A stretch of 64,000 bases of DNA from Convolutriloba macropyga (taxonomy: Eukaryota). The notes under the pieces were generated by a model. The model searched no databases and was not told the origin of the DNA. It was given only the letters and a program-made list of their open reading frames with translations. Position numbers and translations under genes: made by a program. Below, piece by piece: positions 27,634-49,210 of the stretch. Numbering within the stretch: position 1 is the stretch's first letter; each line of letters starts with the position of its first letter. The DNA is taken from contig NC_134468.1 of NCBI RefSeq assembly GCF_964194025.1, forward strand, positions 3,224,001 to 3,288,000, written 5' to 3'.

Positions 27634-28575
27634 TGTGACTGTTCGGACATTAGTGGGAGGGATACAAGTAAGAGAAGCTGATGGTAGTCTGAAAACGTAT
27701 GATTAACTAACAACTGAGTAATTCAGGCATGCGTGTAAATTAACAAGGAAACATATGGTTACCCTAGAAAGAGAAAAGTATACCACCTCTCAGAAGTGAT
27801 TAAATGGGAGATTGAAGTGTGTGGACCATGAATGGTAGGACGAATAAAACTACTAATTATTTTAAATAGAGCAAATCTTAGATTATTGATTTGATTATTA
27901 GTAAAACAAGTATTTGTCGAGCCAATAGTTTTTGAGACGAAGACGAAAAGAGAATGAAATTTGTCAATGATTGTGTTTGTTAAGTTTCTCTAGTTTTTTG
28001 AGAAGCCATTTGCGTTGTGTCATTAAAACCAGCAATTACAGTTATAGTGTGTATTTTTTTTGTCTGAACTGTTGAGGGGTTCTAGTCAAGACCCCGTCGG
28101 TAGTACATCTGAAGGAGTTTATGGTTGCTTTTGGCTGCACAGTAGCCACCAGTGGGCCATACTCTATATCTTTGCCTAACTGAGCGTGGCACTTGCTTAA
28201 AATGAAAAGTTAGAAGTTAATTTATTCAGTAGATCAATGTGAAGAAATGTTGGTTTAAACAAGTTAAAATTAAATAGAGTGGTTGGCTCTGATGTTAGGT
28301 TTGGTGTTCAATGAATGAATTCGATCCTCGCTTTGGTCGGTACCCAATATCAGTTCTTTCATTGTGGTAAATTACCCAAGTCAACAAAGGTATGTCAGTT
28401 GCGTTGATTTGGCTCGAAGCCCGAGCTTTGTCTAATCAAAGATCTATTTTTTCTAACACCTATCACCATTGTGTCAGCCATAAATCAGTTGATAAATCAA
28501 GTTTTAAACTAGATCTTTGACATTGAAACCCAAGGTTCTAGTACATCTTTTTTATATATACGTCTGACACTGGCA
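27634..28575 (-). repeat. Putative 3' LTR of the Gypsy element, preceded by a polypurine tract at 28576-28588
   Basis: Minus strand reads aaagagagggcag (PPT) then TG... at 28575. Opposite end TGTGACTGTTCGGAC at 27634 is a loose inverted match to TGCCAGTGTCAGAC. No 5' LTR is present for confirmation. Confidence 0.5.
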
Positions 28576-28704
28576 CTGCCCTCTCTTTGCGAGAATAAAG
28601 TGCAACACACTCTCAAAGTCAAACGAAATGTTCATTCACTGATCTTGTTATATGAACGTCTTGCTGTAAAAAAAATTAGTATTTTCATATGTAAAGCTTA
28701 TTTA

Positions 28705-29596
28705 TCAGTTTCCGCTGTTCATAAATTTTCCTGCCTTGTCAATTCCAAATATGTTGTACGCTTCTCTCGCCGCATCATTTGTCAGAATTTGATTTGCCCG
28801 GATGATGGTCTTGAAGAACCCTTTGTCTCCACCAGCATCAGGGTGCTTCAACAGGCTCAATTTGTGATAGCGTTTCCTGATTTGATCTTTTCGAAGCAGA
28901 ACTGAACTTTTTATCAACGGAATCTCATATAGCGTAGCAGTCCGGTTCATAATAATTTTGTTTTAATTCTCGAATAAAGATTTCTCAGTGGCCTTTGTTT
29001 TAGAGTTTTTGTTTCTAGGAGAGGGTTTTTGTCGAATCTTTTTTCCGCATTCTTTGGCCAAATACTGGTCGTAGTTTTTCCAGCTGCTCGAGCTCTGACC
29101 GCAATTGGTCATACATTTTCTCAAATTCTTAAATGATTTTCCCCTTTTTAGCAGCATTGACTTTCAAATCGGCCAACTTTTGATTTAATACCTCTATAGA
29201 ATGCTCCTGATGAGCATTTCTGGCTGATGCTGCCTTTAAGTTTTCTCGTTACCCCTCACAATGAGCGCTCCATTTCCCCAATACTTCTTTTGTTGCTTCT
29301 GTGGTCTTGTTGCAATGGTTTCCAGTTCTTGTCAAAGCTCAACGAGGTCTTTTTGAAGTGAGGAGTTAGTGCTCTTCATTTTCTCTAACTGCGAGGACTG
29401 ATTTTGCAGTTCCACTTCAGTCTTCAGAGCACGCAACCGAATATTGGCGGATGCCAGAAGTTCTAGTCTAGAAACTTTCCAAGACCGCTACAGACAGGAT
29501 TCCATTCGGTACATTCCCGGAAAAATCTCGGCAACAGTTTTCCACAATTCTAGCTTGTAGAACACATCATTTTTGCTTCTAAAGTTTCTCGACATT
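28705..29596 (-). pseudogene. Disrupted intronless ORF: coiled-coil region plus C-terminal J (DnaJ) domain (28705-28950)
   Basis: TLYEIP...KDQIRKRYHKLSLLKHPDAGGDKGFFKTIIRANQILTNDAAREAYNIFG has J-domain helices and the HPD motif. Upstream frames are E/K/L/Q-rich with stops. Confidence 0.75.
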
Positions 29597-29639
29597 TTCA
29601 ATCTTGAACTCAATTTTTTTCCTTTTTTCCTGTTGTCTT

Positions 29640-30222
29640 TTGGTCTCGAACTCGAAACGTATCCTTTCTTCTGTTTTTTTTTTTGGTCTTGAACTCAAGA
29701 CAATTTTTTTGGTCTTGACCTCGAAACGTTGCCTATCTTTTTTCTTTTGATCTCAAACTCGAGACGTTCCCTTTTTTTGGTCTCGAAAGACAAAATTTTT
29801 TTGTTCTCGAACTCGAGACAACTTTTTGGTCTCAACCTCGAGACGTTTCTTTTTTCTTTTTTGGTCTTGAACTGAAGTCAATTTTTGGGTCTCGAACTCA
29901 AGAAGTTTCCTTTCTGGTTTTTTTTTGGTCTGGAACTCAAGACATTTTCTTTCTACTTTTTTTGGTCTCAAATTCGAGACGTTGCCGTTTTTTTGGTTTC
30001 GAAAGACAATTTTTTTTTGGTCTCGAACTCGAGACAACTTTTTGGTCCCGACCTCGAGCCGTTTCTTTTTTTTTGGTCTTGAACTCAAGTCAATTGTTTG
30101 GTCTCGAACTCGAGAAGTTTCCTTTCTGTTTTTTTTTTGGTCTTGAAATCAAGACATTTTCTTACTACTTTTTTGGTCTCAAACTAGAGACGTTCCCGTT
30201 TTTTGGTCTTGAATTCAAAACA
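29640..30222. repeat. Array of ~19 imperfect palindromes GTCTCGA-AC-TCGAGAC separated by T-tracts; higher-order period ~213 bp
   Basis: Direct reading. The variant order repeats at ~29749, 29963 and 30175. Confidence 0.9.
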
Positions 30223-30339
30223 AAGTTTTTTTGTTTTTTCTTTCAACAATTGATTATTTTATGGACCCTTTTTCTTCAACCATTTTCTTTTGTTCTCGGC
30301 GTTCATTCTTTAATTTGATTAAATGATTATACATACGTA

Positions 30340-31935
30340 TTCCCATTACGGAGTCAAGATTCCGCAATAGTTGTTAACAAGACGCTCCATTAATAATTAA
30401 TCCTAAACATATTAACAATTTAGGAAGTAAATTTTTACAACTTGAAAAATGAGGTAGAGTGCTAAGAATGACACAGCAATTTCCTTCGTTTTTAACCAGA
30501 TGTATAAGCACTCAGTTTTTAATTCCGAAAAATGGTTATTTCAGTTGCTAGAATAATTTCCTGCTCGTTCCAGTGAATAAAATTTTTATGACTGTAATTT
30601 TCATCCGAATCTGTGAATGCTTCCCGACTGATAATTTCACGACTATTGTGGCGAAATGTTCAATTTGAAATGTTCAAATGTGGCAATTTGAAACTGTTTT
30701 CATCGTGATGTGGAGAAAAAGCTGCTGCGATGCAGGTTTTCATCATTTACATTTAAGTTACAATTGAGCGACCACTGATATATCTCACGATTGAATTTAT
30801 TCAGCCGTTTCTCCGTTTTGTTTAAAACTGCCGTCTTCCTTTTGACAAAATTCGATTACAGCCAGTTGCATGAAACTGTTTCGTAATTATGATACAAATT
30901 TTGTAATAGATCTGTAATCATGATACAAAATGTAAGGGTGTGCATATATCTAATAGAAGAAAAGTTCTGACACTCTAATAACAAAGGAGCTTCTGTGCAA
31001 AAAGGAATTGTTGTTATTGTTGCAACCAGCTTGGCACATTTATGAAAATTTAAAACAGATCCTGTTTTTTCAAAAAATTTTATTGCAAATTTTTCATATT
31101 TGCTTTTGTGTAAAATTTTTCTTCTGTTAAAAGTGGTCGTGTGGTTACCAAAAATTTTTGCAGGGTCATTCTTATGAAACTGCTTGATCGTTTGACATGT
31201 TTGCTAATCTTTATTTTCAAAAAAATTTTTACTTATTTGTCTTCGAAGTGTGTGGCTTTGATGAAAACAGTTTTCCAGAACCGTAGGGGATCCTTAAAAT
31301 TTAATAGATTTCTTTGTAGCAGCTTTCCCCAAATTGTTCCGAAGTTAATTTTTGCACTAATTACCACATTTCCTATAAGCTTTTCTCCTTTAGGTGAAAC
31401 CCACTGCACAGGTTGTTCATACATAGCGCCTTCGTGTCAATTTTTTTGCCATGAAGCTTTGACTATGCACTTCTACATAAAAGGTTTTGCTGTCTTGTCG
31501 TGAAATCGTTTTAGTTACCGACCTGATGACTTTATAAGTCCTATCCTCAAAACTTGGTATGAGAAAATTCTTCTTCTGTCAATTGTTTCTGCAAGTTCCC
31601 TCAATAAAAGGGAATACTGATTCAAGTAGTTCTGAAATTTCTGTGAGAAAAATGACATCGTCATATACGATTCTCTTTTAAGCGCAGACACTTTATATAC
31701 CGCTTCATACATGCAAATATTTAGTTTTATCTCAGGCTGAACCTCAGTTTATATTATTTTTTCCATTGTTATTGGTACTCTGATTTTTCAATCACAGTTT
31801 GTACTGTGATCTAGAGAATAGATCTTTGCTGACACGGTATTGTCAAAACATAACCCTATAACTTGTTACATGGTGATGGAGAAGCAAAAAAAAACTAGCA
31901 ATGCCAGATACAGACATAGTGATACTCCCTCATAC
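30340..31935 (-). pseudogene. Probable env-like glycoprotein ORF remnant of the Gypsy element
   Basis: Starts MGVSLCLYLALLVFF (signal-peptide-like), then Cys-containing GLCFDNTVSAKIYSLDHSTNC, and ends in hydrophobic LPKLLICLGLIING. Lies directly 3' of integrase. Frameshifted. Confidence 0.5.
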
Positions 31936-32299
31936 GATCCTCCGGAAAAACTCGCCTTTCTTTTCAATTCTATTATCTCTTTCTAAATTTTCCTGAAACC
32001 AAACATCATCAGTTTTCTGACTGCTAAAGTACTCTTCATCTTGCTCAGTAAAGTAATTCTTTGAATTCTCAGGCACCAATTTTAATGGGCTGCTACTTTG
32101 TAGTCATTTTTGGTGCTTCGGGATCAATATTAACCTCTTCTTTAGTACATTTTGTTTTACTACAAGATGTGTGTGGTTTTTTCTCTGGTTTTGGACTTTT
32201 TGATTCTGCTGCTTTTTTTAGCGTACTCTTTAAGTTTCAACAAACTGCACCTCCTCTCTCGGCAACTTTGTTTGCCTTCTCAAGCTCTTTAGAGGTTTC

Positions 32300-35200
32300 T
32301 TACTCTGATTCTTTAGCTTCATTCTCAGACGTGTCATTTGTAACATTTAATGAATCGTTAGCATCCTCAGCTTCAGATTGATTTTCTGTGTTTAGATTAC
32401 TTTCACTGTCTTTGGAAGATTCCATTTCTTTTTTATCATCAAAGTCTGAGCTGTTCAAATCAATTTTTTCTGCCCATTTACTGTTTTTTCCCTTTTGCTC
32501 AGGAGCGAATGACTTTTCTCCTGTTTTATGCTTTTTCAGTTGGTCATAATGGACCTTCCTCCTCTTTTTATGTTCTACTTGGAAGTTCAAATTGTTTAAA
32601 ATTTCAACTATTGTGTATAGCTCTATATAAAAAGAAGTCAATTTTCTTGTTTTTTTTTAAAGTTGGGTTGGAAACTAACATTTCTTCGCCAACCTTATAG
32701 CTCGTTCAATACCTACTGCAATCATAATAGGTCTTCTGGCGTTATTGTTTGAATCCATATGTTCTCGCATCAACTAATCCGTTTCCTGTAGTTTGTTTTT
32801 TCATTGTGAAAACACAGGGACTTGATATTGCATATATTTTGGTGTGTGGTTTGCTATAGATGCAGTATATAGGTGGGAACAATGGAAAACCCAGTACCAC
32901 ATATGCTGGGCTGTATTTTTTACCTTAGGGATTGATGTTCGATAGACCATCATCGCTAAGGGCAGAAATTTGGTCCACTCATTTTGATATTGGCCTATTC
33001 ATTTAGAGAGACGTTCATCTATTGTCCGATTTTTTCTTCTTTCAATCATCGCGTTCCGTTGTGGTTGTTAGGACGTTATTGATGTCTTCTGAGTTCCTAG
33101 TTCAATGCAAAGACTACGAAATAGTTTTGACATAGAGTTCGACCCTTGTTCACTGTGTACTTGACAGTGTTCAGCAAACACTCTTGAGACGGTTTTTGCC
33201 TCTTAGTTGGGTAAAGCTACCGCTCCATAACACTTACTGAATTGATCACCGAGACGCAAAAGGTACTTGTTTCCCTGAGACTCGTGAAATGGATCCATGA
33301 TATCAAGAGATACTTGCCAAAATGGTTGTCTAGGTTTCAATTTTGCGAGTGAATGCCGATGTTAGTGCCTTAGCTTTTTAGGGCACATGTCACAGTTTTC
33401 AATACAGTTTCTTACGTCCCTCCTCATGCACGGCCAATGAAACCTTTCAGAAGCCTTCTGGTACGTTTCCTCAATCCGAAAATGACCTGCGCTAGGAGAG
33501 TCATGCAACAGTTCAAGCACGTTGGACACTCTCTACCATTGTACAGCCATTTGGTAAACGGTCTCCTCAAAGTTAGGTTCTGTTTTGTGTTTACCATACA
33601 AAGTCCCTTCTATGAGACAAAGGTTTGTACACTGAACGCAGTATTTCCATAATTCTTTGGATGCTCCAATTTTTATTTGCCCTGTTCCTGTTTTTTGTTC
33701 AGAACCCAGGTGCATATTTCTCTGAGTAGCGTGTCATTTTAATGCAAATCTCGTAGTTTTACTCTCTGCAGTTTTTCTAACTGCTAACCTCAACTGACAT
33801 AATCGTAATGATTGCTCTGCGTCTATCGCAATAGCGTTAACAAAAGCTGTTTGTTCATCATCATCATCAGTCAGTTTGCGCGACAGACAGTCGGCGAGTG
33901 GCGTTGCCTGCTGCACTATGCTTGATGTCAAAGTTAAATTGCCCAAATTTCTCTGTCCATCTTGCAACCATACTGTCCGGTTCTTTAAAACTATAGATCC
34001 AGTCACGAGTCTGCTGGTCCGTTATAATTGAAAAGTTCTCACTAAGTAACAAAATTTTAAAATGTTGCGTAAAATGAACAATTGCAAGTAATTTGGCTTA
34101 GTTGCTGAACAATATTGCTGAGTTTTACTCATAGTTTTGCTAGCATATGCAATAACTCTATTCTCCGGTCCTTGTTTCTGGGTAACAATTGCTCCATTTC
34201 TTGTCAACGAACCATCCGTAGTTAATGTTGATATATACGGATCCCTATTATTTGTATATTATAAAACTGGGACATCCAGAAGCCTCTTCTTTAACTCCGT
34301 TACCGCATTTTTGCACTTTGGATTTCAATTAAATTTTTTTGACATTTTCAGTAGCCTGTTAATAGGTCCTGCTGTTTTTTCGAAACCCGGAATAATTTTT
34401 CGATAATAGCCCACAAGAGCTCGAAAGGCCCAGACACCTCTCAGGGAGGATGGTTCTTTCATTCTCTCTGCCGATCTTACTTTCTCTGGGTTGACCTCGA
34501 CCCCATTCTTGGATATAATGTGCACCAAGAAGCTGACACGCTCTTAGAAAAAACTGCATTTTGATCCCTTAATCTTTAATCCATTCTCCGCTAAACGTTG
34601 GAATACCAGTTCTAATTGTTTCATATGTTCGTCGAAATTTCTTCCGAAAACGATAACGTCATCTAGATACACTAGAGCCGTTTCGTAAGAGAGGCCAGCA
34701 AAATCAACCTCACTATAATTTGAAAAATTCCCGGTTCAGAGGCTAGTCTTTTAGGAATACTTTGCCAGTTATACAGGCCCAGAGGCGTTATTAAAGCTGT
34801 TAAATTCTGACTCTTTTCTTCGAGCGCCATCTGGAAGTCACCCGACTGGAGATCTATGGGGACTATTGTAATGTTTTTCCCAATTTACCCGCAAAAAGGT
34901 TGGTTTTTTTCTGGTGTTGAAAATACAGTCAAAATTATATAAGACTTCGTTGCCCAAGAAACAAGGCGTTATCTCATTTTCGGTGACTAAAAACTCAAGT
35001 GTTATCTCAGATGTTAATTTTTGAAGTTGGACTTGAATAGCTGTTGACTTCTTTACAGGCACTTTTCCATTGCTGGCAGCTATTATTTTTTTATTGCACA
35101 CTCTGATCTGGCTCATTTCTCCCAGCTGTTGGTAGAGTGTGTCGCTTAAAATGTTAACACTACGTCCTCTATCAATTAAGACCATTATCAATATGTCTTT

Positions 35201-35772
35201 TATCAATATTTTGGCAATCAAGGCCTCCAATGGGCTGTTTCCGCCACGCACAATTTTTACGTAGATTGCTGAAAATGAAGCCCTGCTATCTTCAGCTAGT
35301 TCTCGTTTAAACACGGGCAATTTCGTTTGAAATGATTTGACTGCCACATTACCTAGATGCAAGATTTCTCTGACAGCAACGGCGACATCTTTCTCTCAAA
35401 GCTCACCGCTGTATTTGATTGCTCAGAACGACTCTCGTCCGTCCAATCTCGGCTTCTGATCTCTTCTCCTTGTGTTGGTGATCGCGCTCTTCTATCGTAT
35501 ATGGCTCGTCTATTATCAATTCTAATTCTTTATAGCTATTATAGTTTCTATTTTTCTATCTCCGGTTTCTCTAGAATGTCGCTCACCTCCGGAACCTCTT
35601 TGGGCCTCGACCCTTGCAATGAAAACTTGATTATCTTGCATGTTAGATTGGTTAGTCTATAATGTTTACACTAAATCATTAATCGAATTAAAGAGTTGAT
35701 TGTTTTCATTCGGATGGATGGCAGAAAACCGCGGCTCATTATCTTCCTCCTCAATTCATTTAGGGTCCAGGT
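32300..35772 (-). mobile_element. Degraded Gypsy LTR retrotransposon gag(3' end)-pol: protease, RT, RNase H, integrase
   Basis: Protease VLIDRGRSVNIL (ORF 34838-35362); LVYLDDVIVFG (~34645-34677); HIISKNGVEVNPEKV; RVIAYASKTMS; RFHWPCMRRDVRNCIENCDMC; FWQVSLDIMDPF; KVHYDQLKK. PR-RT-RH-IN order. Confidence 0.9.
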
Positions 35773-35773
35773 C

Positions 35774-35905
35774 CATGATGATAAAATTGACAGAGAGAAT
35801 CTGATTTGTTCACGAAGGCTTTGAAAAGTTTATTTGACTGTCGGAATCTTCAGTTAAGCACGTATCGAGATATTCAGATATAATAAGGTAGAATATGGAT
35901 CCAGT
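35774..35905 (-). promoter_or_regulatory. Copy of the ~135-bp conserved block
   Basis: catgatgataaaattgacagagag...ggtagaatatggatccag. Confidence 0.4.
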
Positions 35906-36019
35906 ATTTTGAAGCGCGGAGCACCATTCACCTAAGAAACACTATGGCAGTACATTGAGAACAACTGATTAAATGGATTTAAATTTTTGTTAGTGAAACA
36001 ATTGAAAAATTTGATTTAA

Positions 36020-36165
36020 AAAAAAACAACCTGGTGATATTGATGCCAGACGGGTGTCTCAGGGTGTGTTCTGTCACGAATCCACTCGCTGGGTGGTAAA
36101 GACAAGATCTGCAGAGCTAACTTACTAAATAGAAAACGCTATTTATTAAGTTTATCACAACGATT
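36020..36165 (-). ncRNA. 3' part of the interrupted target locus: SL-like motif AATCGTTGTGATAAACTTAATAAATAG, hairpin and downstream T-run; candidate SL-RNA-like gene or pseudogene
   Basis: Motif at 36139-36165. 14-bp stem 36119-36132/36139-36152 with one mismatch. GTAAGT at 36125-36120. Its 5' part (AGCCT plus TSD) lies at 40657-40675. Confidence 0.45.
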
Positions 36166-39100
36166 TTTTTTCTTTGTTTATACAATAAAAAAAGGACCGT
36201 GTACAACATCCGGCAACGATGGATGTAGGTCGGAACATAAGGGATGATGAGTAGCATTTAGACGGATGCTGCACTACAAGCTGTTCCCCTCCAGACAGTG
36301 TAAGGACGGCCCAGTCACAAAACTAACTAACANNNNNNNNNNNNNNNNNNNNNNNNNNNNNNNNNNNNNNNNNNNNNNNNNNNNNNNNNNNNNNNNNNNN
36401 NNNNNNNNNNNNNNNNNNNNNNNNNNNNNNNNNNNNNNNNNNNNNNNNNNNNNNNNNNNNNNNNNNNNNNNNNNNNNNNNNNNNNNNNNNNNNNNNNNNN
36501 NNNGTATGGAAGGGTTGAAATAAAAATAGGATATCAAGGAATAAGCAAAGGAAAAAAAAGTTAAGCAGCCAAACACTCGGTGCAGCCTTCCCTCCTTCAC
36601 GACAGCGCTAATTGAAATCTCACTGAGAGCACGAGACTTGAGGGCGCGAAACCCCATTAAGCAGAGAACACAGCTCCTCAGAAATTCGAAGCTGATTTTC
36701 GTTCGGATGTAGCTTATAGTGTCGGCGTACGGCTTTCCGCGTTTTTCGCTGATCTTGTTTGCGAGTTGTTTCATAGCGGGCAATAATGATGGCCCAGCAC
36801 CGCTGGAGCAAGCAAAAACCCGTGCGTTGAAACTGCTGTGTTCGGTTTCGCGGATTCGCTCTTCGTACTTATTTCGATTGATTCTCTCGTGATATTTGTA
36901 AGAATCTTTTATGTTCGTTGGGCAGCCCTTCGCGTGAGGGTTGAAAATCTTCACATCGCAAAAATGCCATTAAAGCGGGAGCCCCACAGACCGTTTGCCT
37001 TGATGTCCAGTCGAGCGTCGTCATCAGTAGTGGTGGAATTACTCGAGAAAATTTCTCGATCGCGCGACTGAAGTTTTGGCTTTATCTCGACATCGTGGCA
37101 AATGTCATCCATCAGGTTTGCAAACACGTCTTTGATTTTGTTGTGTCCTAGGTCGGTATACTTTCTGTGGCGCAATGTAGGGCATGATTGAGGCTAAATT
37201 CTTTCACGCATGGGACTATAGCTGGCGTGTTCTTTGCTTCCCAGGTGTAGCGAGGTGCTATTCCATCACGGAATTCAGTCTTCGTGAGGTCAAAACCATG
37301 TTTTGATAACGGAAGCGCGTTAAACCAGCTAGATGCTCCTTTCTCCGAGGCCAGCTGGATTGTATACTTAATTTCTGGTAGATTGTTTTCGATTCTGGAT
37401 TTTTTTCGAGATGAGTTCACGTTGCATGTCTGCTTTCTGTCTGAGACTGATCTTGGTTTGATCTAATTCACATTGTTGAATTTCGAATGAATCATTATTG
37501 AATGACGCCAATGGACCTGAGAGTTCAATTGATTGCTCATGACTTTTAGAAGGATCTTGTGGGAGGGTGATGTTAAGCCCACCCATTCTGAGAGGGAGAG
37601 AGAAAAGTTCTCTTTCCTCTTGGATTATTTCTTTGCCGACGATGTTCGGTGTGACTCGGCCAAGTCGCTCCTCCATCTTGTCCAGAACCCCGTCCATGGA
37701 GGGTGTAGTACGCGAGAAGAAGCTCAACTTCTGTTGAACCCCCTTCGTCAAACATGCATAGGCATTCTGGGGAGAGATGAGAGCAAACTGACCAAGTCTG
37801 TCCAAACTTTCTGTGTATTCAATTTCTGCATCTTTCAGGAAATACTTACTGGCCTCAGAGCTACCGATAACCGATCCCAGGACTCGAGCGCCGTGTGTGA
37901 TTTCCACATTAGTGCCTGAAATCACAGTTGACGCTTGGCACTGGCCTCCTGGCTTAATTATCAACTGACACTTCGGAGGATTGACAAGATATCCGTACTT
38001 GGGACCAAGCTGAATGAGCTTGTCGAAGAGTGTCAGATATCTTTTAACTTACCGACGGCGCTACTCGTAAGCATACCATTTTTGTGTCAAGGAGTCATTG
38101 TGAAGTCTTGATATTAGGGGTAGGATTGGAGTTCCATAGCTTGCCATCGCAAGGGGATCGCCTTGTGTTGTACCTTCCTGAGACAGAATGGTCGAATTAT
38201 CGATGTAGAGAAAAAACGGATGGCTATAGGAATACTGTATGGCAATATGCAATGATGGGCATAAGGTCTTCACGTTCTCTAATGCTGTTCTTCTATTCAG
38301 CACGTTAATTGCGTTTTTGGCATCAATTAGTAGAATTGCTTCGTTTTCGGGATCATCAAAACTGTGGCGAAGCGAGTGTATGGCATGTTCTATGCCGCAT
38401 TTCTGGCCCAGGCACAGCTTCACGTTTCTACCGAGGGATGTTAGATCTTGCCTGATGCAGCCGACGATTATGTGACTGGTGATGCGACGCATTACTTCAC
38501 CAATAACAATAGGTCTCAATCCTGGACATTTATCCAGAGCCACTAGTTGACATCCAATGTATGCAATCAAATCATCCAGTAGTATTACGGACGTGGCCAG
38601 CCTCTTAGCAAACTTGGCAACAAGCTTGCACATGTTCATGGAGGTTTGCCCGAAAGCAGAAAGTAGTCTACGCCAGTCATCGGCATCGAGACCTGAAGGC
38701 CCGGCACTGCCATGAGTCTTCATTGCATTCTTTCGAACGAGCCTGGCACTGATTTTTTTAAAACAGCGGCGTGGTAGGGAAGCGTGCTTGGATGTTCGCT
38801 CTGAATGCAGTTGGGCTCCGAGGGTTGCCTTTCAGGATGTTTGTTGCGTAAGATCTCGAGGACCGGTCTACCGTCTATGAGATCGGTAGGAGCGAGCACG
38901 CCGCTTTTAAGCTCATCCGAAATAACGCGAATAGCAATACTGATCTGACCACGAAAGATGAAATCGTTGAGCATCTTGAGGTCAGAGTGCTGCTTTTTAT
39001 TCCTTGAGTTCATTCTCATTTGGATTGCCTTCGCTTCACAGAACAGTTCCGAGAAGTTGCAGCTGTGCTATTCACGCAGTCTACGCTTCATGATCTTTTT

Positions 39101-39489
39101 GTTTGATCCATCGTCCGTGTTCTTTGTTCGACTAAGAGTTAAGTGCGGAAGTATCATACAGAGGGTCAGAGATATATCGGATCTATCCGTGTTTACGGAA
39201 ATCGGGGAGAGGACACTGTGAAGGGCTTCGGCGAACTGTTCCCCTGTCTTGTTTCTACTGAGCGTGGAGAACGAGGGCTTCCATTTGACGACCTCGCGGT
39301 ATATTTTGCGCACTGTTACCGCGTGATGAGGCTGGAATTTGTCCCAAAATTTATCTAATGGTGCGGCGACGGAACGTTCTGGGTCGTGCGATGTTGCAGG
39401 ATCTATTAGTGCAGTGTCGGGAACGGTCTAATCATTGTGTGGTGCCGGCGTTGCGATTGCTGTTTCGGTGGCTGCGGTGACCGCAGAGC

Positions 39490-39613
39490 AGCTTTTGCAG
39501 CTGAAGTGTTCGATCCACTCTTTCGCTGCCGCTAGGCCACTGCATTTCACGTGAAAAAATTTATAACACGTATGACACCACCCCTACGTAGGGGACCCTT
39601 GAAGAGTGGACAA
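39490..39613 (-). pseudogene. PHD-finger remnant at the N-terminus of the CRE ORF2 (copy at ~44634-44757)
   Basis: Minus strand translates to WCHTCYKFFHVKCSGLAAAKEWIEHFSCKSC. A degenerate first Cys pair (CPLF) lies upstream across a frameshift. Confidence 0.7.
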
Positions 39614-39672
39614 TGGGTTTGATCAGCCGTCAGGCTTCGAGCTAGGAGTGGGGAAGGCTGTACTGAGGGGGA

Positions 39673-40242
39673 CTAGGTTAAGTTAATTACATGAGAGTAA
39701 TAGCGGCATCGATATTTAACGTATTGAATGATGTTAAACAGAATAATATTGAAAACATGGTTTCCAGGAAAGGACAAGTGCAGAGGGTCTTTACAGAACA
39801 GCTTAGGCTCAAGAACATTCCTAGATGAGGATAAAACAATAAACAGCTTGAAGGCACAAGAATCAGTATAATTATACAAAGCGTAGTTAAGGGCACTAAT
39901 TTTCTTATTTGTGGGGCGATTACAACTGGTGGGTATAACATTAGGAACAAACAAATTATTTGGGCTAAAATTCACAATTATGAGCTGAATGAGGAATTTC
40001 CAATGCTCTATGAAAGTTTCAATACTACTACGGTGATCATTAAAGCCAGCGATTACTACAATAGTGTTCATTTTCTGATTTGGGTGTTGATTGACAACAT
40101 CACAGAGGTCTAGCAGTTTAGCACCTCGATAGAAATGTACAAAACCCTGTACTTGACCCTCGTATTTATATTTGGTACGATAAGTGCCCAAGACGAAGTC
40201 TGAGCAGCTGGAGGGAAGAGGGTTGTCATCAAAACGTCCCAT
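39673..40242 (-). CDS. SGNH/GDSL-hydrolase (esterase)-like ORF1 of the CRE element, 189 aa
   Basis: Blocks in SGNH order: FVLGTY (block I position, Ser absent), YRGAKLLDL (II), IVVIAGFND (III), CKDPLHLS..GN (V, DxxH). Confidence 0.75.
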   Translation of the reverse strand: MGRFDDNPLPSSCSDFVLGTYRTKYKYEGQVQGFVHFYRGAKLLDLCDVVNQHPNQKMNTIVVIAGFNDHRSSIETFIEHWKFLIQLIIVNFSPNNLFVPNVIPTSCNRPTNKKISALNYALYNYTDSCAFKLFIVLSSSRNVLEPKLFCKDPLHLSFPGNHVFNIILFNIIQYVKYRCRYYSHVINLT

Positions 40243-40561
40243 TCACGGAGCCTGCTAACATTCAGAACACAAGAAATTGCTCTAAAAATGAAATCAGTTA
40301 TATGGTACAACTTGATATGATGAAGGAAAATGGTTGGAATCAATACATCACTTTCACGGAGCCCGCTAACATTCAAAAACACAATAAATTGTTCTAATAA
40401 TGGAATCAGTTGGAATGATACGACCTGATGTGATGAGTCGGGGTGGGAGATTGGTTCACTCGCCTACGACTGGGGTGGCGAGGCTTGAAAAGGTGTAGGT
40501 TTGATTCAGCCCAGCGCGCATACGTATTTGAAAATACAGCGGAGGTAAATTTGTTCGGGAG

Positions 40562-40675
40562 CTATTTAATAAGTTTATCCCAACAATTAAGATGGACCGA
40601 TTAGTTTTCGCAAGCTTGGCCTATTTAATAAGTTTATCACAACAATTAGGCTACGATTATCACAACGATTAGGCT
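40562..40675 (-). other. Cluster of SL-like motif copies: degenerate (40562-40590), full 32-nt AGCCTAATTGTTGTGATAAACTTATTAAATAG (40621-40652), target 5' half (40657-40675); duplicated at ~45706-45819
   Basis: Directly visible in sequence. SL identity is inferred. Confidence 0.6.
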
Positions 40676-40805
40676 CATGATGATAAAATTGACCGACAGA
40701 ACCTTATTTGTGCAGGAAGGCTTTGAAATGTTTATTTGCTGTCGCAATATTCGGATAAACAAGTATCAAGACGTGCAGATGTAATATGGTAGAATATGGT
40801 TCCAG
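40676..40805 (-). promoter_or_regulatory. Conserved ~135-bp block immediately upstream of the SL-like target (copy at 45820-45949)
   Basis: Abuts the first base (A of AGCC) of the target motif. Confidence 0.45.
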
Positions 40806-41282
40806 TTTCCCGGAAATGTGAAAATAAATTTTTTTGAAATTTTGTAGTAAAAGCTGATTAATCCCCTCTTATTGTGTTTATTTTCCAATGATTCATCAAC
40901 TGAAGCGTTTTACGAAAAATGAAAATCTGAATTTTTGGACGCATTGGGTCAATTTGGTTCTATTGAAACAGGTATTTAAGTGTTTATTTTAATCAAAATC
41001 AGTTATTTTAAGTTTCTTGAGCCTTAATTATAGGAAAATGTAGTCATTGTTTTCTGAGCTCCTTTCAAAAATTATCAGTACGTTTTTGTTTGCTCTACGA
41101 TGAAGCTCTTCAGTTTTACGCATGAGGGACTGCGGGCGCTGAGGTGCTCTTCTGACACAGAAAATTTGAATCTATTCAACCCCATAACCCCACCCCCTCC
41201 CCCGTTTCATCGGCATGCAAATTTTCTGCGCAAATTTTTGGCGCAGGCACCCAATTTTAACGTGCTATGTAACAATACAAAT

Positions 41283-42641
41283 ACTGAAGAACACAAACAA
41301 AACATAAGTCTACTGAAGAACGTCTCAAAAGTCTTCGAGAAAGTCATCTTGGAACGGCTTTACCCCACCGATAGAAAGAACTCTCTCTGACTCCCAACAC
41401 GGTTTCGGAATGAAAAGATCAGCAGTCCTTCAAATCATCCTCTTCACAGACGAACTATACCAGCAACTTGAATCGAAAAAATGCATTAACATTCGAACTC
41501 TTTATGTTGACTTCAGAAAAGCCTTTGACAAAGTAGCGCACAAAAGACTCTTTCAGAAGCTTGAGGAAATTGGCCTCGGAGGAAAGCTACTCCAGATACT
41601 CAAACGCTATCTCACAAACCGAACGAAATGCGTCAAAATTGGGACAAGCAAATCAAAGACCAGAAATAAAACCAACGGAGTATCTCAGGGATCAATTTTG
41701 GGGCCTTTGATGTTCATCATCTACATTGAGGATCTCCCCGAAGAAATCTCAGACATCCTGGCCTTCGGATACGCGGATGATTTCAAAGCAATTATCCACG
41801 GAGACCACTCTCGGGGAAATACAGAAATGGAGCAAAGCAAACCATATGGACCTAAATGTTAGCAAAAGAAAAACTTTCCTCGTCAGAGGGGATCTAGCAT
41901 AGCGTGACGAGGCAGGTCTGGAAACCGTTGCCACCCAAAAAGATCTCGGAGTCGTAATGTCTCAAAATCTCTCTTGGAGCGCAAACTGCCACCATAGAAC
42001 AACCAAAGCGTGGAAAGCCTTCTACACACTCAAACGAACTCTTTCGAGCAGAACCTCAATGGAAACGAAACTGAACGCGTATATAGGATCCGTGCCCATA
42101 CTCACGCCTCCCAAGTCTGGTACCCGTCGAAGTCTGACATGAAATCAATCGAGAAGATCCAGCACAAGGCCACAAAGTGGATATGCGGTGGAGACGAAGA
42201 ATACCATCAAAGACTCGAAACACTGAAAATACTCCCACTCTCCATGTTACTGGAAATGCACGATGCCCTCTATCTCCTCTCAATCCTAGAAGGCAATTAC
42301 TACGTCCCCGAAGACAAACTGCACAAGCAAAAAGAAAACGAAACAAGACAAAAGCAGGAATTTGAACTCCCCAAACACCGACTACAGAAATCAGACAAAA
42401 CTTCTTCAGAGCCACAAAGCTATACAACATCATCAGAAGAACAACGGAGAAGCCAATGGCAAAGAAACTTCTGACAGAGATGTACCAAAACTACTTCCAC
42501 AGAAGCTACAACGAACTCAACAGCTGCACCTGGAGACTTCTATGCAACTGTGGACTCTGCAATCCAATGAAAAACTCTTGCCAATCGAAAACAAGGGTTT
42601 ACACCCGTGGGCTCCGACCCTAAAGACCTACTACTACAAAT
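41283..42641 (+). mobile_element. 5'-truncated CR1-type LINE with short (CTA)n tail; possible TSD tacaaat (41276-41282/42635-42641)
   Basis: ISLLKNVSKVFEK, QHGFR, YVDFRKAFDKVAH, GVSQGSILGPLMF, YADDFK, KDLGV, IEKIQHKATKWI. Frameshifted. Confidence 0.9.
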
Positions 42642-42845
42642 TGTAATTGGGAGGCATAAAGAATAACGAGCAGGGAGGGGGACAGAATAGATCCGAAAAT
42701 TCTGTAACGGCAAGAGGGGGGGAGACTACCCAAACCTACAGTTTATATATATTCATGTTTTCTGACCTTTGTTTTATACCTGACGATATTTGACTACCTT
42801 CAAAATTTATACATGTGCACAGGAGTTGACTGGCTGTCCCCGAGT

Positions 42846-45800
42846 TACGCGAGAAGAAGCTCAACTTCTGTTGAACCCCCTTCGTCAAACATGCATAGGC
42901 ATTCTGGGGAGAGATGAGAGCAAACTGACCAAGTCTGTCCAAACTTTCTGTGTATTCAATTTCTGCATCTTTCAGGAAATACTTACTGGCCTCAGAGCTA
43001 CCGATAACCGATCCCAGGACTCGAGCGCCGTGTGTGATTTCCACATTAGTGCCTGAAATCACAGTTGACGCTTGGCACTGGCCTCCTGGCTTAATTATCA
43101 ACTGACACTTCGGAGGATTGACAAGATATCCGTACTTGGGACCAAGCTGAATGAGCTTGTCGAAGAGTGTCAGATATCTTTTAACTTACCGACGGCGCTA
43201 CTCGTAAGCATACCATTTTTGTGTCAAGGAGTCATTGTGAAGTCTTGATATTAGGGGTAGGATTGGAGTTCCATAGCTTGCCATCGCAAGGGGATCGCCT
43301 TGTGTTGTACCTTCCTGAGACAGAATGGTCGAATTATCGATGTAGAGAAAAAACGGATGGCTATAGGAATACTGTATGGCAATATGCAATGATGGGCATA
43401 AGGTCTTCACGTTCTCTAATGCTGTTCTTCTATTCAGCACGTTAATTGCGTTTTTGGCATCAATTAGTAGAATTGCTTCGTTTTCGGGATCATCAAAACT
43501 GTGGCGAAGCGAGTGTATGGCATGTTCTATGCCGCATTTCTGGCCCAGGCACAGCTTCACGTTTCTACCGAGGGATGTTAGATCTTGCCTGATGCAGCCG
43601 ACGATTATGTGACTGGTGATGCGACGCATTACTTCACCAATAACAATAGGTCTCAATCCTGGACATTTATCCAGAGCCACTAGTCGACATCCAATGTATG
43701 CAATCAAATCATCCGGTATTATTACGGACGTGGCCAGCCTCTTAGCAAACTTGGCAACAAGCTTGCACATGTTCATGGAGGTTTGCCCGAAAGCAGAAAG
43801 TAGTCTACGCCAGTCATCGGCATCGAGACCTGAAGGCCCGGCACTGCCATGAGTCTTCATTGCATTCTTTCGAACGAGCCTGGCACTGATTTTTTTAAAA
43901 CAGCGGGGTGGTAGGGAAGCGTGCTTGGATGTTCGCTCTGAATGCAGTTGGGCTCCGAGGGTTGCCTTTCAGGATGTTTGTTGCGTAAGATCTCGAGGAC
44001 CGGTCTACCGTCTATGAGATCGGTAGGAGCGAGCACGCCGCTTTTAAGCTCATCCGAAATAACGCGAATAGCAATACTGATCTGACCACGAAAGATGAAA
44101 TCGTTGAACATCTTGAGGTCAGAGTGCTGCTTTTTATTCCTTGAGTTCATTCTCATTTGGATTGCCTTCGCTTCACAGAACAGTTCCGAGAAGTTGCAGC
44201 TGTGCTATTCACGCAGTCTACGCTTCATGATCTTTTTGTTTGATCCATCGTCCGTGTTCTTTGTTCGACTAAGAGTTAAGTGCGGAAGTATCATACAGAG
44301 GGTCAGAGATATATCGGATCTATCCGTGTTTACGGAAATCGGGGAGAGGACACTGTGAAGGGCTTCGGCGAACTGTTCCCCTGTCTTGTTTCTACTGAGC
44401 GTGGAGAACGAGGGCTTCCATTTGACGACCTCGCGGTATATTTTGCGCACTGTTACCGCATGATGAGGCTGGAATTTGTCCCAAAATTCAAAATTTATCT
44501 AATGGTGCGGCGACGGAACGTTCTGGGTCGTGCGATGTTGCAGGATCTATGAGTGCAGTGTCGGGAACGGTCTAATCATTGTGTGGTGCCGGCGTTGCGA
44601 TTGCTGTTTCGGTGGCTGCGGTGACCGCAGAGCAGCTTTTGCAGCTGAAGTGTTGGATCCACTCTTTCGCTGCCGCTAGGCCACTGCATTTCACGTGAAA
44701 AAATTTATAACACGTATGACACCACCCCTACGTAGGGGACCCTTGAAGAGTGGACAATGGGTTTGATCAGCCGTCAGGCTTCGAGCTAGGAGTGGGGAAG
44801 GCTGTACTGAGGGGGACTAGGTTAAGTTAATTACATGACAGTAATAGCGGCATCGATATTTAACGTATTGAATGATGTTAAACAGAATAATAGTGAAAAC
44901 ATGGTTTCCATGATAGGACAAGTGCAGAGGGTCTTTACAGAACAGCTTAGGTTCAAGAACATTCCTAGATGAGGATAAAACAATAAACAACTTGAAGGCA
45001 CAAGAATCAGTATAATTATACAAAGCGTAGTTAAGGGCACTAATTTTCTTATTTATGGGGCGATTACAACTGGTGGGTATAACATTGGGAACAAACAAAT
45101 TATTTGGGCTAAAATTCACAATTATGAGCTGAATGAGGAATTTCCAATGCTCTATGAAAATTTCAATACTACTACGGTGATCATTAAAGCCAGCGATTAC
45201 TACAATAGTGTTCATTTTCTGATTTGGGTGTTGATTGACAACATCACAGAGGTCTAGCAGTTTAGCACCTCGATAGAAATGTACAAAACCCTGTACTTGA
45301 CCCTCGTATTTATATTTGGTACGATAAGTGCCCAAGACGAAGTCTGAGCAGCTGGAGGGAAGAGGGTTGTCATCAAAACGTCCCATTCACGGAGCCTGCT
45401 AACATTCAGAACACAACAAATTGCTCTAAAAATGAAATCAGTTATATGGTACAACTTGATATGATGAAGGAAAATGGTTGGAATCAATACATCACTTTCA
45501 CGGAGCCCGCTAACATTCAAAAACACAATAAATTGTTCTAATAATGGAATCAGTTGGAATGATACGACCTGATGTGATGAGTCGGGGTGGGAGATTGGTT
45601 CACTCGCCTACGACTGGGGTGGCGAGGCTTGAAAAGGTGTAGGTTTGATTCAGCCCAGCGCGCATACGTATTTGAAAATACAGCGGAGGTAAATTTGTTC
45701 GGGAGCTATTTAATAAGTTTATCCCAACAATTAAGATGGACCGATTAGTTTTCGCAAGCTTGGCCTATTTAATAAGTTTATCACAACAATTAGGCTACGA
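42846..45800 (-). mobile_element. Duplicated 5' two-thirds of the CRE element (3'-truncated by the duplication breakpoint)
   Basis: Near identity to 37709-40656. Confidence 0.92.
44817..45386 (-). CDS. SGNH-hydrolase-like ORF1, duplicate copy, 189 aa
   Basis: Same motifs as 39673-40242 with a few substitutions. Confidence 0.75.
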   Translation of the reverse strand: MGRFDDNPLPSSCSDFVLGTYRTKYKYEGQVQGFVHFYRGAKLLDLCDVVNQHPNQKMNTIVVIAGFNDHRSSIEIFIEHWKFLIQLIIVNFSPNNLFVPNVIPTSCNRPINKKISALNYALYNYTDSCAFKLFIVLSSSRNVLEPKLFCKDPLHLSYHGNHVFTIILFNIIQYVKYRCRYYCHVINLT

Positions 45801-46425
45801 TTATCACAACGATTAGGCTCATGATGATAAAATTGACCGACAGAACCTTATTTGTGCAGGAAGGCTTTGAAATGTTTATTTGCTGTCGCAATATTCGGAT
45901 AAACAAGTATCAAGACGTGCAGATGTAATATGGTAGAATATGGTTCCAGTTTCCCGGAAATGTGAAAATAAATTTTTTTGAAATTTTGTAGTAAAAGCTG
46001 ATTAATCCCCTCTTATTGTGTTTATTTTCCAATGATTCATCAACTGAAGCGTTTTACGAAAAATGAAAATCTGAATTTTTGGACGCATTGGGTCAATTTG
46101 GTTCTATTGAAACAGGTATTTAAGTGTTTATTTTAATCAAAATCAGTTATTTAGGTTTCTTGAGCATTAATTATAGGAAAATGTAGTCATTGTTTTCTGA
46201 GCTCCTTTCAAAAATTATCAGTACGTTTTTGTTTGCTCTACGATGAAGCTCTTCAGTTTTACGCATGAGGGACTGCGGGCGCTGAGGTGCTCTTCTGACA
46301 CAGAAAATTTGAATCTATTCAACCCCATAACCCCACCCTCTCCCCCGTTTCATCGGCATGCAAATTTTCTGCGCAAATTTTCGGCGCAGGCACCCAATTT
46401 TAACGTGCTATGTAACAATACAAAT

Positions 46426-47785
46426 ACTGAAGAACACAAACAAAACATAAGTCTACTGAAGAACGTCTCAAAAGTCTTCGAGAAAGTCATCTTGGAACGG
46501 CTTTACCCCACCGATAGAAAGAACTCTCTCTGACTCCCAACACGGTTTCGGAATGAAAAGGTCAGCAGTCCTTCAAATCATCCTCTTCACAGACGAACTA
46601 TACCAGCAACTTGAATCGAAAAAATGCATTAACATTCGAACTCTGTATGTTGACTTCAGAAAAGCCTTTGACAAAGTAGCGCACAAAAGACTCTTTCAGA
46701 AACTTGAGGAAATTGGCCTCGGAGGAAAGCTACTCCAGATACTCAAACGCTATCTCACAAACCAAACGAAATGCGTCAAAATTGGGACAAGCAAATCAAA
46801 GACCAGAAATAAAACCAACGGAGTATCTCAGGGATCAATTTTGGGGCCTTTGATGTTCATCTTCTACATTGAGGATCTCCCCGAAGAAATCTCAGACATC
46901 CTGGCCTTCGGATACGCGGATGATTTCAAAGCAATTATCCACGGAGACCACTCTCGGGGAAATACAGAAATGGAGCAAAGCAAACCATATGGACCTAAAT
47001 GTTAGCAAAAATAAAACTTTCCTCATCAGAGGGGATCTAGCATAGCGTGACGAGGCAGGTCTGGAAACCGTTGCCACCCAAAAAGATCTCGGAGTCGTAA
47101 TGTCTCGAAATCTCTCTTGGAGCGCAAACTGCCAACGTAGAACAACCAAAGCGTGGAAAGCCTTCTACACACTCAAACGAACTCTTTCGAGCAGAACCTC
47201 ATTGGAAACGAAACTGAACGCGTACATAGGATCCGTGCCCATACTCACGCCTCCCAAGTCTGGTACCCGTCGAAGTCTGACATGAAATCAATCGAGAAGA
47301 TCCAGCACAAGGCCACGAAGTGGATATGCGGTGGAGACGACGAATACCATCAAAGACTCGAAACACTGAAAATACTCCCACTCTCCATGTACCTGGAATT
47401 GCACGATGTCCTCTATCTCCTCTCAATCCTAGAAGGCAATTACTACGTCCCCGAAGACAAACTGCACAAGCAAAAAGAAAACGAAACAAGACAAAAGCAG
47501 GAATTTGAACTCCCCAAACACCGACTACAGAAATCAGACAAAACTTCATCAGAGCCACAAAGCTATACAACATCATCAGAAGAACAACGGAGAAGCCAAT
47601 GGCAAAGAAACTTCTGACAGAGATGTACCAAAACTACTTCCACAGAAGCTACAACGAACTCAACAGCTGCACCTGGAGACTTCTATGCAACTGTGGAATC
47701 TGCAATCCAATGAAAAAACTCTTGCCAATCGAAAACAAGGGTTTACACCCGTGGGCTCCGACCCTAAAGACCTACTACTACAAAT
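46426..47785 (+). mobile_element. Duplicate of the CR1-type LINE
   Basis: Near identity to 41283-42641. Confidence 0.9.
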
Positions 47786-49210
47786 TGTAATTGGGAGGCA
47801 TAAAGAATACTGAGCAGGGAGGGGGACAGAATAGATCCGAAAATTCTGTAACGGCAAGAGGGGGGGGGGAGACTACCCAAACCTACAGTTTATATATATT
47901 CATGTTTTCTGACCTTTGTTTTATACCTGACGATATTTGACTGCCTTCAAAATTTATACATGTACACAGGAGTTGACTGGCTGTCCCCGAGTTTGCAGAC
48001 TGTCCTTTAGGGGAAGGGGGCTTTCTGTCAGTTGACAGTTTAAAATACGTTTATGCTAGTCAGCCCTATTTTCAGTAGGAATAATGTTGTTCATGGTAAA
48101 ACAGAATTTCAATTTTAAGTTTGAATCGGAAAAGTTGTTTAAGAATCCACACTTTATTATTTTTGATCAAGAACTACGGAATGATCGGAGGAAAATCAGA
48201 AACATGCATTATATAGTTGCTTGGTTTTTTATCTGATGGTGAAAAGTTGTATCGGCATTTTGTTAGTATTCAATAATACGTGCATATGCTTGGTAAACGT
48301 TTGTTCGCAGTACTGTTATTTTTAGTACTGACTGAAGAATAACGTCATTTTATTTAAAGAACATTGGTATTTATCCTGATGGTAATATGAACAACACGCA
48401 AACGTGCGATCAATTGCGTCAGCTTCTCTTTAAGAGGTAAACACGTTGATTACATTAGCTAAGTTCACGACAGTCATATAAATATCGAATGTTAAAAGCT
48501 GCCTTTCATTTTCTCAAAATTCTGTTGAAGTCGCTATATCTTAATTTATCATTTTCTCACGAACGTGAGCTGACAAAATGGTCTGATTTCTCCAAAATGT
48601 GAATTGTAAGTATAGAAGCCGTAATTCAATTCGGTTGATTGCCTGTTTTAAAGCTGTGCTTTGATAACTGTTTTTTTTTCAGTTGGGCTATTTGGTAAAA
48701 CTGCTGTGTTAGCAGTAAAGCAACTCAGGACTATCAACTATGAATAACTGAACTTGGAAATTCTGCAGAGATGCTGCACCAAAAAAGACAATTAGTTGAA
48801 CCAGTGACAAAGGACAACTCCAACGACGACCACGACCAAGCTTTGACGAATTGTGCGGCAAACCTTAGGCAATTCTATTGGCGATATTACTTCAAGGAGT
48901 GCTTTCTAATACGAAGCTGCCAACGAGTCTAGGTCGATTTATATAGGCAAATTCTCTCAGGAGAGAGAGAGGAAGTCAATCTAGCAATATAGAAACTTTT
49001 TAGAAAAGAATTTTCAATTTTAATATCAACTGACTTCATTTTAGTGCAAATAACTCTTACTTTATAAATTACACAATCGTGAATATTCACTGCGTGAGGT
49101 ATTAACTTGGTTAACTGATTGAGAAGGGAGTGAATAACGTTCTTATATTATCTCTGTGCGAGTTATTGGGAATTAAAAAGCGCGGTGAAAAGTGACGGAT
49201 CAGGGTGAAA

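Follow-up and report, generated by a model that had tools for sequence, protein, structure and literature searches.

Stacked spliced leaders inside the target site duplication of a retrotransposon of the acoel Convolutriloba macropyga

The window analyzed here is a 64,000-nucleotide (nt) stretch of the genome of the acoel Convolutriloba macropyga (assembly GCF_964194025.1, contig NC_134468.1, positions 3,224,001 to 3,288,000), to which all coordinates given without a contig or locus name refer. On its minus strand lies a degenerate, putatively R2-like retrotransposon without long terminal repeats (non-LTR retrotransposon; body at 36164-40561), which is headed by two copies of a 32-nt motif that is the spliced leader (SL) of this organism. 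The two copies, hereafter the outer and the inner leader, are enclosed by a single target site duplication (TSD), and the insertion has split an SL-like small-RNA gene unit.

The insertion and its target

Read along the minus strand, the locus consists of a flank, the first part of a target exon, four extra nt, the outer leader, a spacer, the inner leader, the element body, an A-rich tail and the second copy of the TSD. The first part of the target comprises the 5' 19 nt of an SL-like exon variant, AGCCTAATCGTTGTGATAA (40657-40675), with a C at leader position 9, where both internal leaders differ, and its last nt form the upstream TSD copy (40657-40668, or 40657-40670). Next come TCGT (40653-40656), which repeats the first 4 nt of the TSD, and the outer leader (40621-40652), which runs from AGCC to AAATAG and is identical to the canonical SL exon at 32 of 32 positions. 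The spacer (40591-40620) is 30 nt long, or 27 nt when the inner leader is aligned at full length. The inner leader (40562-40593) matches the SL at 29 of 32 positions and ends with AAATAG directly before the body, which starts with CTCCCGAACAAATTTACC at 40561 and runs downwards from there. The A-rich tail (36164-36175), ~4.4 kb further on, is followed by the downstream TSD copy TCGTTGTGATAA (36152-36163), which repeats 40668-40657, and then by the 3' part of the target exon, ACTTAATAAATAG (36139-36151), which completes the 32-nt leader variant. The TSD measures 12 bp, or 14 bp if an AA possibly belonging to the tail is counted. Together, TSD and tail flank TCGT, both leaders, the spacer and the body; because the TSD encloses both leaders, the whole stack came as one retrotransposed RNA. 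A first-pass annotation, made from the sequence alone, had described stacked leaders, a spacer and four extra nt inside a TSD, all of which are confirmed here base for base. Its decayed inner leader, placed at 40590-40562, is likewise real, but the full 32-nt alignment extends over 40593-40562. The leader 25-mer is found at 5 places in the window, compared with 0.00 expected from shuffles, which rules out a chance occurrence.

The target exon differs from the internal leaders at two diagnostic positions: TCGTTG in the target stands against TTGTTG in both leaders, and TTAATAAA stands against TTATTAAA. In the outer leader, position 9 is T (C in the target) and position 25 is T (A in the target). 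These differences, to which the first-pass annotation had already pointed, are real, and the internal leaders were therefore not copied from the insertion site. They bear directly on the possibility that the outer leader was supplied by the target DNA, either because the insertion hit a tandem array of SL-like exons or through gene conversion or duplication. Such an origin is favored by the insertion site itself, an SL-like gene unit in a region where such units are arranged in tandem. However, not only does the outer leader differ from the target at positions 9 and 25, but it also lies inside the TSD, and after removal of one TSD copy the two target halves fuse into one clean 32-nt exon. A target-derived outer leader is thus very unlikely.

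Several features of the region could point to an assembly artefact, in which a chimeric join was made within a highly repeated motif: leader k-mers are extremely repeated, with a depth bin ~1000-fold above those of their neighbors, the region lies within a 5.1-kb tandem duplication and the element contains an assembly (N) gap (36333-36503). Against this, DNA-like unitigs from four public runs (three samples) span 40626/40630-40752 with zero mismatches and thereby connect the outer leader through TCGT to the target copy and the flank beyond, and the 5' junction is therefore no assembly chimera. In addition, both tandem copies, which are 1.15% diverged overall, have an identical stack. That the stack is an artefact of assembly is hardly credible.

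The tandem duplication is 5,144 bp long (37709-42846 versus 42846-47993, 98.85% identical). It contains a second, identical stacked-leader copy (45706-45820, minus strand), which is a product of duplication at the DNA level; since it lies inside the duplication, it represents the same insertion and not an independent one. The breakpoint at 42846 is a plain DNA junction with 1-nt microhomology and without poly(A), and a retrotransposition-mediated origin of the duplication was rejected on these grounds. Local tandem pairs 2.3-5.1 kb apart are found at about 7 of roughly 35 loci of the same element family, namely in the window, at L069/L070, L074/L077 and L081/L087, and at C4:19643297/19646542, C7:3177642/3181120 and C7:33897994/33900808. 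In the first four of these pairs, those with sequence at hand, the upstream flank is duplicated together with the 5' part of the element. The tandem pairs of the family may alternatively be false haplotype duplications in the assembly.

The interrupted target unit spans 35906-36151 and 40657-40806 on the minus strand, and similar units are found at loci L004 and L033. Its remaining part, downstream of the insertion (35906-36151, minus strand), contains the exon 3' part ACTTAATAAATAG and then the hairpin partner CTATTTAGTAAG. The interrupted unit is without a GT donor directly after AAATAG, and GTAAGT is found 19 nt further on. In the SL-like units the 3' end of the leader is paired with CTATTT..ATAAG in a tight hairpin, and the units at L004 and L033 also contain an Sm-like motif, AATATTTTTGGG, and a terminal stem. 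Judged by these features, the SL-like units could be pseudogenes, an SL-derived helper RNA analogous to SmY of nematodes, or a long-exon variant of the SL. Such units are arranged in tandem here, and the homologous upstream region of the next one lies at 35774-35905. The homology of this neighboring upstream region stops at 35772-35774, exactly where the leader exon should start, and a long insertion that the first-pass annotation called a Gypsy element (27634-35772) begins there. In each of two adjacent SL-like units of this small array, a retroelement has thus hit the leader exon or its edge.

The leader and the retrotransposon family

The 32-nt motif has exactly the sequence published for the SL of another acoel, Symsagittifera roscoffensis, which was reconstructed as GCCTAATTGTTGTGATAAACTTATTAAATAGA in a species in which 30% of genes are trans-spliced (PMC9911081). 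A full-text literature search with a 22-mer of the motif matched this genome paper and no other. The motif is also identical to the exon of ~1,293 SL RNA genes with a GTAAGT donor, counted as exact matches to exon + GT. Nearly all of these copies, among the matches listed, are in tandem arrays on contig C9 (23.1-23.7 Mb), where the canonical gene unit consists of the leader, then GTAAGT, a hairpin partner and further stems. Within the arrays (C9:23.14-23.74 Mb, loci L045-L063) the listed copies are mostly ~1.07-1.63 kb apart and on both strands, and their upstream regions are of two kinds. Across the 1.18 Gb of genome searched, the leader 22-mer with at most two mismatches occurs ~3,229 times, compared with 8 times for the reversed control; subtracting the exon + GT count from this total leaves roughly a thousand or more dispersed leader copies outside the SL gene arrays. 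The motif in the window is the real SL of the organism, more than merely an SL-like sequence. A search of the whole window against Rfam (gathering threshold) and with ARAGORN gave no match.

In the window copy of the element, the open reading frames (ORFs) are split across several frames. Its 5' untranslated region (UTR) contains 112-bp tandem repeats (40211-40436), whose copy number differs among family members (e.g., four or more at C4:44802609). Further downstream are a remnant of ORF1 (39673-40242), pieces of a reverse transcriptase (RT; 38061-38723 and 37368-37964) and CCHC/endonuclease-like pieces (37148-37420 and 36951-37175). Eight ORF pieces of this copy gave no Pfam match, even at E = 10, and PDB sequence searches with single ORF pieces and with the relative P0005 yielded nothing useful. 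The RT piece has thousands of relatives. Full-length relatives are ~1,100 amino acids long, with RVT_1 at the center, a PHD finger in one case and no apurinic/apyrimidinic (AP) endonuclease; in the C-terminal part of their consensus, a CCHC motif precedes RHNEIRD...EP...D...FDV. The profile of the relatives matched R2 retrotransposon proteins in the PDB (E = 4e-9) and, weakly, the CCHC region of Bombyx R2Bm (E = 0.09). Based on the domains of these relatives and on the profile match to R2 proteins, we call the element a putative R2-like non-LTR retrotransposon without AP endonuclease.

The family comprises at least 40 copies with a common 5' UTR and 85-94% identity, and 26 independent copies were examined at their 5' ends. 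In 20 of the 26, one full-length leader is found directly before (AA)CCCCCGAACAAATTTACC; five possess a truncated or degenerate leader and one has none. The similarity among the 20 starts at AGCC and the leader ends at AAATAG, while the upstream flanks are unrelated. A single leader is therefore the norm of the family, and the inner leader of the window copy is found at the family's usual junction. A further copy, L097, comes from an independent ENA assembly; it is headed by one leader, with the extra nt TG at its 5' junction, ends in an A-rich tail and is flanked by an 8-bp TSD (3236-3243 and 7609-7616 of that locus). Two further candidates were set aside: leaderless L066, considered as an unspliced version that might show the acceptor, has an unrelated upstream sequence with a small 5' stutter, and Logan contig L096 encodes a 54%-identical relative, has no leader and probably comes from another organism.

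All family copies examined but one (25 of 26) are in unrelated sequence, and only the window copy is in an SL-like exon; none of the family matches listed is located in the SL arrays on C9. The family does not target SL genes. The targets in the window (40657-40668) and at L097 (3231-3243) contain a common 9-mer, TCGTTGTGA, in the same register and ending 3 nt before the 5' junction. This sharing, noticed post hoc and with a chance expectation of ~0.002, involves a motif that resembles leader positions 9-17, and a search of the other 24 flanks for target motifs of this type found nothing above chance. It could reflect chance or a weak pull towards leader-like targets.

At least three independent copies of the family have two leaders, and each is arranged differently: the leaders of the window copy are separated by the spacer, the full outer leader of L080 abuts an inner leader that starts at position 7, and at C11:34068660 the two leaders meet at an AG/CC junction (the slash marks the boundary). 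The arrangements therefore do not represent a fixed internal repeat. The first-pass annotation had proposed that the 5' ends of many copies be aligned; such an alignment gives one leader in most copies and two in a few, in differing arrangements. The case that it had named as contrary to its own reading, the same 5' repeats in all copies and a motif confined to the element, is contradicted by these arrangements and by the identity of the motif with the SL exon. A repeat fixed in the 5' UTR, or a leader-bearing element inserted into another one, might still be considered, given that nearly all family copies have leader-like sequence at the same junction and that part of this sequence could accordingly be passed on with the element. 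However, the spacer and second leader are so arranged only in the window copy and its tandem duplicate, and the motif heads many unrelated sequences. As regards a nested insertion, the two TSD copies stand outside the whole stack rather than around the inner unit. Either version of this explanation is highly improbable.

Stacked leaders and their proposed history

An exact-pattern search of the genome found 12 stacked leader pairs, 10 of which are independent. Where the two leaders are no more than 6 nt apart (n = 7), six of the seven pairs read AAATAG/CCTAATTG, and the full AGCC of the older leader is kept in none. The AAATAG/CCTAATTG junction recurs at 7 separate loci, one of them the copy of the window's own family at C11:34068660; the bodies downstream are of at least 5 kinds, and these are therefore independent events. 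The new leader is joined directly after the AG that forms positions 1-2 of the older leader, which is exactly what the use of a 3' splice site gives. We regard the AG/CC junction, on the evidence of its sequence, as a probable splice-acceptor signature of the kind described for relict SLs of dinoflagellates; the likeness to dinoflagellates, already drawn in the first-pass annotation, is thus borne out by six of the seven closely abutting stacks.

Leaders outside the family have equally sharp edges. At 27 dispersed leader loci on C1, the similarity is sharp from AGCC to AAATAG, with unrelated sequence on both sides, so that the earlier statement that leaders end at AAATAG and are followed by differing sequence holds for these 27 loci as well as for 20 of the 26 family copies. 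In two other SL-headed families, the short form begins exactly after the TTTCAG of the long form (L010/L013 and L005/L020). Specifically, L013, L017 and L018 read leader, ~40 nt, TTTCAG and then CTCCTGATTG, and the leader of L010 stands directly on CTCCTGATTG; L020 and L021 read leader, TTTCAG and then AGATGAGCC, and the leaders of L005, L011, L014 and L019 stand directly on AGATGAGCC. A scan of 27 other leader loci for a TSD or poly(A) found neither within 1.5 kb, and these units are probably longer. Eight of the 27 dispersed leaders on C1 head one repeat family (L005, L009, L011, L014, L019, L020, L021 and L026), in which the leader is joined 2 nt before ATG (…AG/AGATGAGCCAGCGAGGCATG) or at acceptors a little further 5'. 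Among the copies whose flanks were compared (L005-L030 and L067-L092), about two thirds have a T before AGCC, often TT, which matches the TTTT/AGCC context of canonical SL genes. This bias may arise either from SL RNA that sometimes starts 1-2 nt further upstream or from a target or junction bias.

Other 5' ends are less regular. L079 (C15:26514860) has five or six stacked partial leader 3' fragments upstream of its body, each ~13-16 nt long and ending in AAATAG or a near variant, which fit neither complete trans-splicing nor simple stutter. At L035/L036 (C2:14281265) the leader and the first 7 downstream nt (GTCAAAT) are repeated with a 6-nt filler, at L042/L043 (C8:47764583) the leaders are palindromic and head-to-head, and L009, L074 and L084 contain 10-16-nt stutters of the leader 5' end, AGCCTAATTG. 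Such irregularities suggest that the RT may frequently jump between templates at leader-capped RNA ends.

Of the two leaders of the window copy, the outer is the younger: the outer leader and TSD have 0 changes in ~60 nt (0 of 32 in the outer leader), compared with 3 of 32 in the inner leader, a difference that is supported by a one-sided Fisher p of ~0.04 in a small sample. The three substitutions of the inner leader are private within the family; a search for siblings with its TTGGG variant found six loci, all with unrelated bodies. The TSD around the stack, the pristine outer leader and the decayed inner leader agree with the suggestion of the first-pass annotation that leaders were captured repeatedly in successive cycles. 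In the star-like tree of the family, terminal branches measure 2-10%, and the window pair is on a private branch of ~5%. The RNA was therefore derived from a parent that had diverged beforehand and was not a fresh transcript of a master copy. Such a parent agrees with an inner leader that had existed as DNA for some time, and also with mobilization in trans of a copy with ORFs that were probably damaged by then.

Searched genome-wide with at most three mismatches, the spacer is found only at the window locus and in its tandem duplicate, and, when compared with the upstream regions of canonical or SL-like genes, it is no more similar to them than shuffled controls are. We infer that the spacer is the transduced 5' flank of the parent copy. 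Based on these observations, we propose that a read-through transcript of an older leader-bearing copy was probably trans-spliced in its flank and then retrotransposed. Under this proposal, RNAs of the family would be SL trans-spliced like host mRNAs, and because the RT runs to the 5' end of the RNA, the 32-nt leader would be written into DNA at the head of each copy. The parent would have been an older, diverged copy whose DNA-encoded leader is now the inner leader and which was transcribed from upstream, by read-through or from a nearby promoter. An AG acceptor in the flank of the parent, ~27-30 nt before the old leader, would then have received a fresh SL by trans-splicing. The resulting RNA (new SL, flank spacer, old SL, body and A-tail) would have been reverse transcribed at a nick in the SL-like small-RNA gene, probably with enzymes supplied by another copy, since its own ORFs were broken; mobilization would thus have been in trans. 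The insertion would have left the 12-14-bp TSD and the 4 extra nt at the 5' junction, and a later tandem duplication at the DNA level would have doubled the 5' part of the element. The further idea of the first-pass annotation, that the leader may have supplied homology for 5' joining, is not borne out: the GTGATAA end of the target could have paired in register with leader complementary DNA (cDNA), but the junction is out of register and contains 4 extra nt.

A number of points weigh against this proposal. The contrast in age between the two leaders amounts to three substitutions only. Leader divergence within the family (31 of 608 positions, 5.1%) equals the terminal branch lengths, and with a star-like tree the renewal of leaders in each cycle and the inheritance of single leaders therefore predict the same result. 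No parent locus carrying the spacer is present in the assembly, and since the event also removed the sequence upstream of the spacer, the acceptor AG is not visible. Trans-splicing of the family's transcripts is deduced from genomic DNA. Finally, template switching at 5' ends clearly occurs in this genome, as seen from L035, the AGCCTAATTG stutters and the head-to-head leaders, and one cycle of it could have sufficed to add both the spacer and the outer leader.

In such a cycle, the RT would have copied the parent RNA up to the old leader and then jumped to another SL-bearing mRNA, from which it took ~30 nt of 5' UTR and the leader. The outer leader would then come from a bystander RNA, and the element's own RNA would not have been trans-spliced. 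Besides the repeat at L035, the stutters in L009, L074 and L084 and the head-to-head leaders at L042/L043, the extra nt at the 5' junctions, TCGT in the window and TG in L097, speak for a template switch. However, the spacer has no match elsewhere with at most three mismatches, whereas a host 5' UTR would be expected in a near-complete assembly; the parent RNA would have had to begin exactly at the first bases of the old leader; and the prevailing junction of abutting leaders is of the AG acceptor type and not two full-length leaders side by side. We consider a template switch rather unlikely and suggest that the outer leader was gained by trans-splicing. Under trans-splicing and template jump alike, the two leaders were acquired in successive rounds.

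Related systems and implications

Retrotransposons with a restriction-like endonuclease that are specific for SL genes include CRE1/CRE2, SLACS and CZAR of trypanosomatids and NeSL-1 of Caenorhabditis elegans, each of which inserts at one fixed position of the SL gene. To our knowledge, none of them possesses a complete trans-spliced leader at its own 5' end. Like these elements, the family described here is RT-centered and lacks an AP endonuclease, its relatives have a C-terminal CCHC motif and a nuclease-like motif, and one copy is found in an SL-like exon. Unlike them, it has no fixed site in SL RNA genes, with 25 of 26 copies elsewhere. Mammalian L1 elements undergo 5' transduction and form U6/L1 chimeras by template switching, and in these cases, as in the window, an upstream flank or a second RNA is attached at the 5' end of the insertion inside the TSD. 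In contrast to L1, the added piece here is capped by a precise trans-spliced leader, which points to RNA processing before reverse transcription.

The closest parallel is found in dinoflagellates, for which relict SLs and "mRNA recycling" were reported by Slamovits and Keeling in 2008, as summarized in later reviews (PMC6050394, PMC5585692). Dinoflagellate retrogenes also have a DNA-encoded SL at the retroposed 5' end, tandem leaders are possible and the more 5' leader has fewer mutations; according to the summary given in one of these reviews, a new leader is likewise joined to an AG in or at the edge of the old one (PMC6050394). Here, in contrast, the host is a bilaterian animal, the carrier is an RT-encoding retrotransposon family and not a host gene, the new leader of the window copy stands on a 27-30-nt spacer and not on the AG of the old leader, and TSD and A-tail are directly visible. 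In Schistosoma mansoni, six genome-encoded SL exons are merged to transposable elements, possibly trans-spliced elements that were copied back, in a tentative report whose authors allow for a chimeric assembly (PMC5832876). That report includes no TSDs, family census or stacked leaders, whereas here a leader heads most copies of a family and dispersed leaders number roughly a thousand or more genome-wide. In the literature searched, relict or stacked leaders are described only for dinoflagellates, and for animals fusions of SL and transposable element appear only in this tentative remark on S. mansoni. The acoel genome paper makes no mention of genome-encoded leaders on repeats (PMC9911081). 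The present analysis adds a stacked structure verified inside a TSD, a census of its family and an AG/CC statistic that ties stacking to the re-splicing of DNA-encoded leaders.

For genome annotation, genome-encoded leaders will be mistaken for evidence of trans-splicing or for SL genes. For the biology of the family, stacked leaders would serve as a molecular tally of retrotransposition rounds, with one leader for every RNA that passed through the trans-spliceosome before being copied into DNA. Going further, we suggest tentatively that SL trans-splicing may be a working step, and no accident, of the retrotransposon life cycle, with the AGs of the leader (positions 1-2 and 31-32) or of the flank acting as portable 3' splice sites. 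It is conceivable, with the same reservation, that promoterless copies are maintained in this way: read-through host transcripts would be cut into capped, translatable and recopiable RNAs, and stacked leaders would count the generations. If the proposed history holds in a bilaterian, for an RT-encoding element family, retrotransposons can gain a cap and a defined 5' end from SL trans-splicing with no promoter of their own, read-through transcripts can remobilize dead copies, and retroposition events in acoels can be dated and counted by means of genome-encoded leaders.
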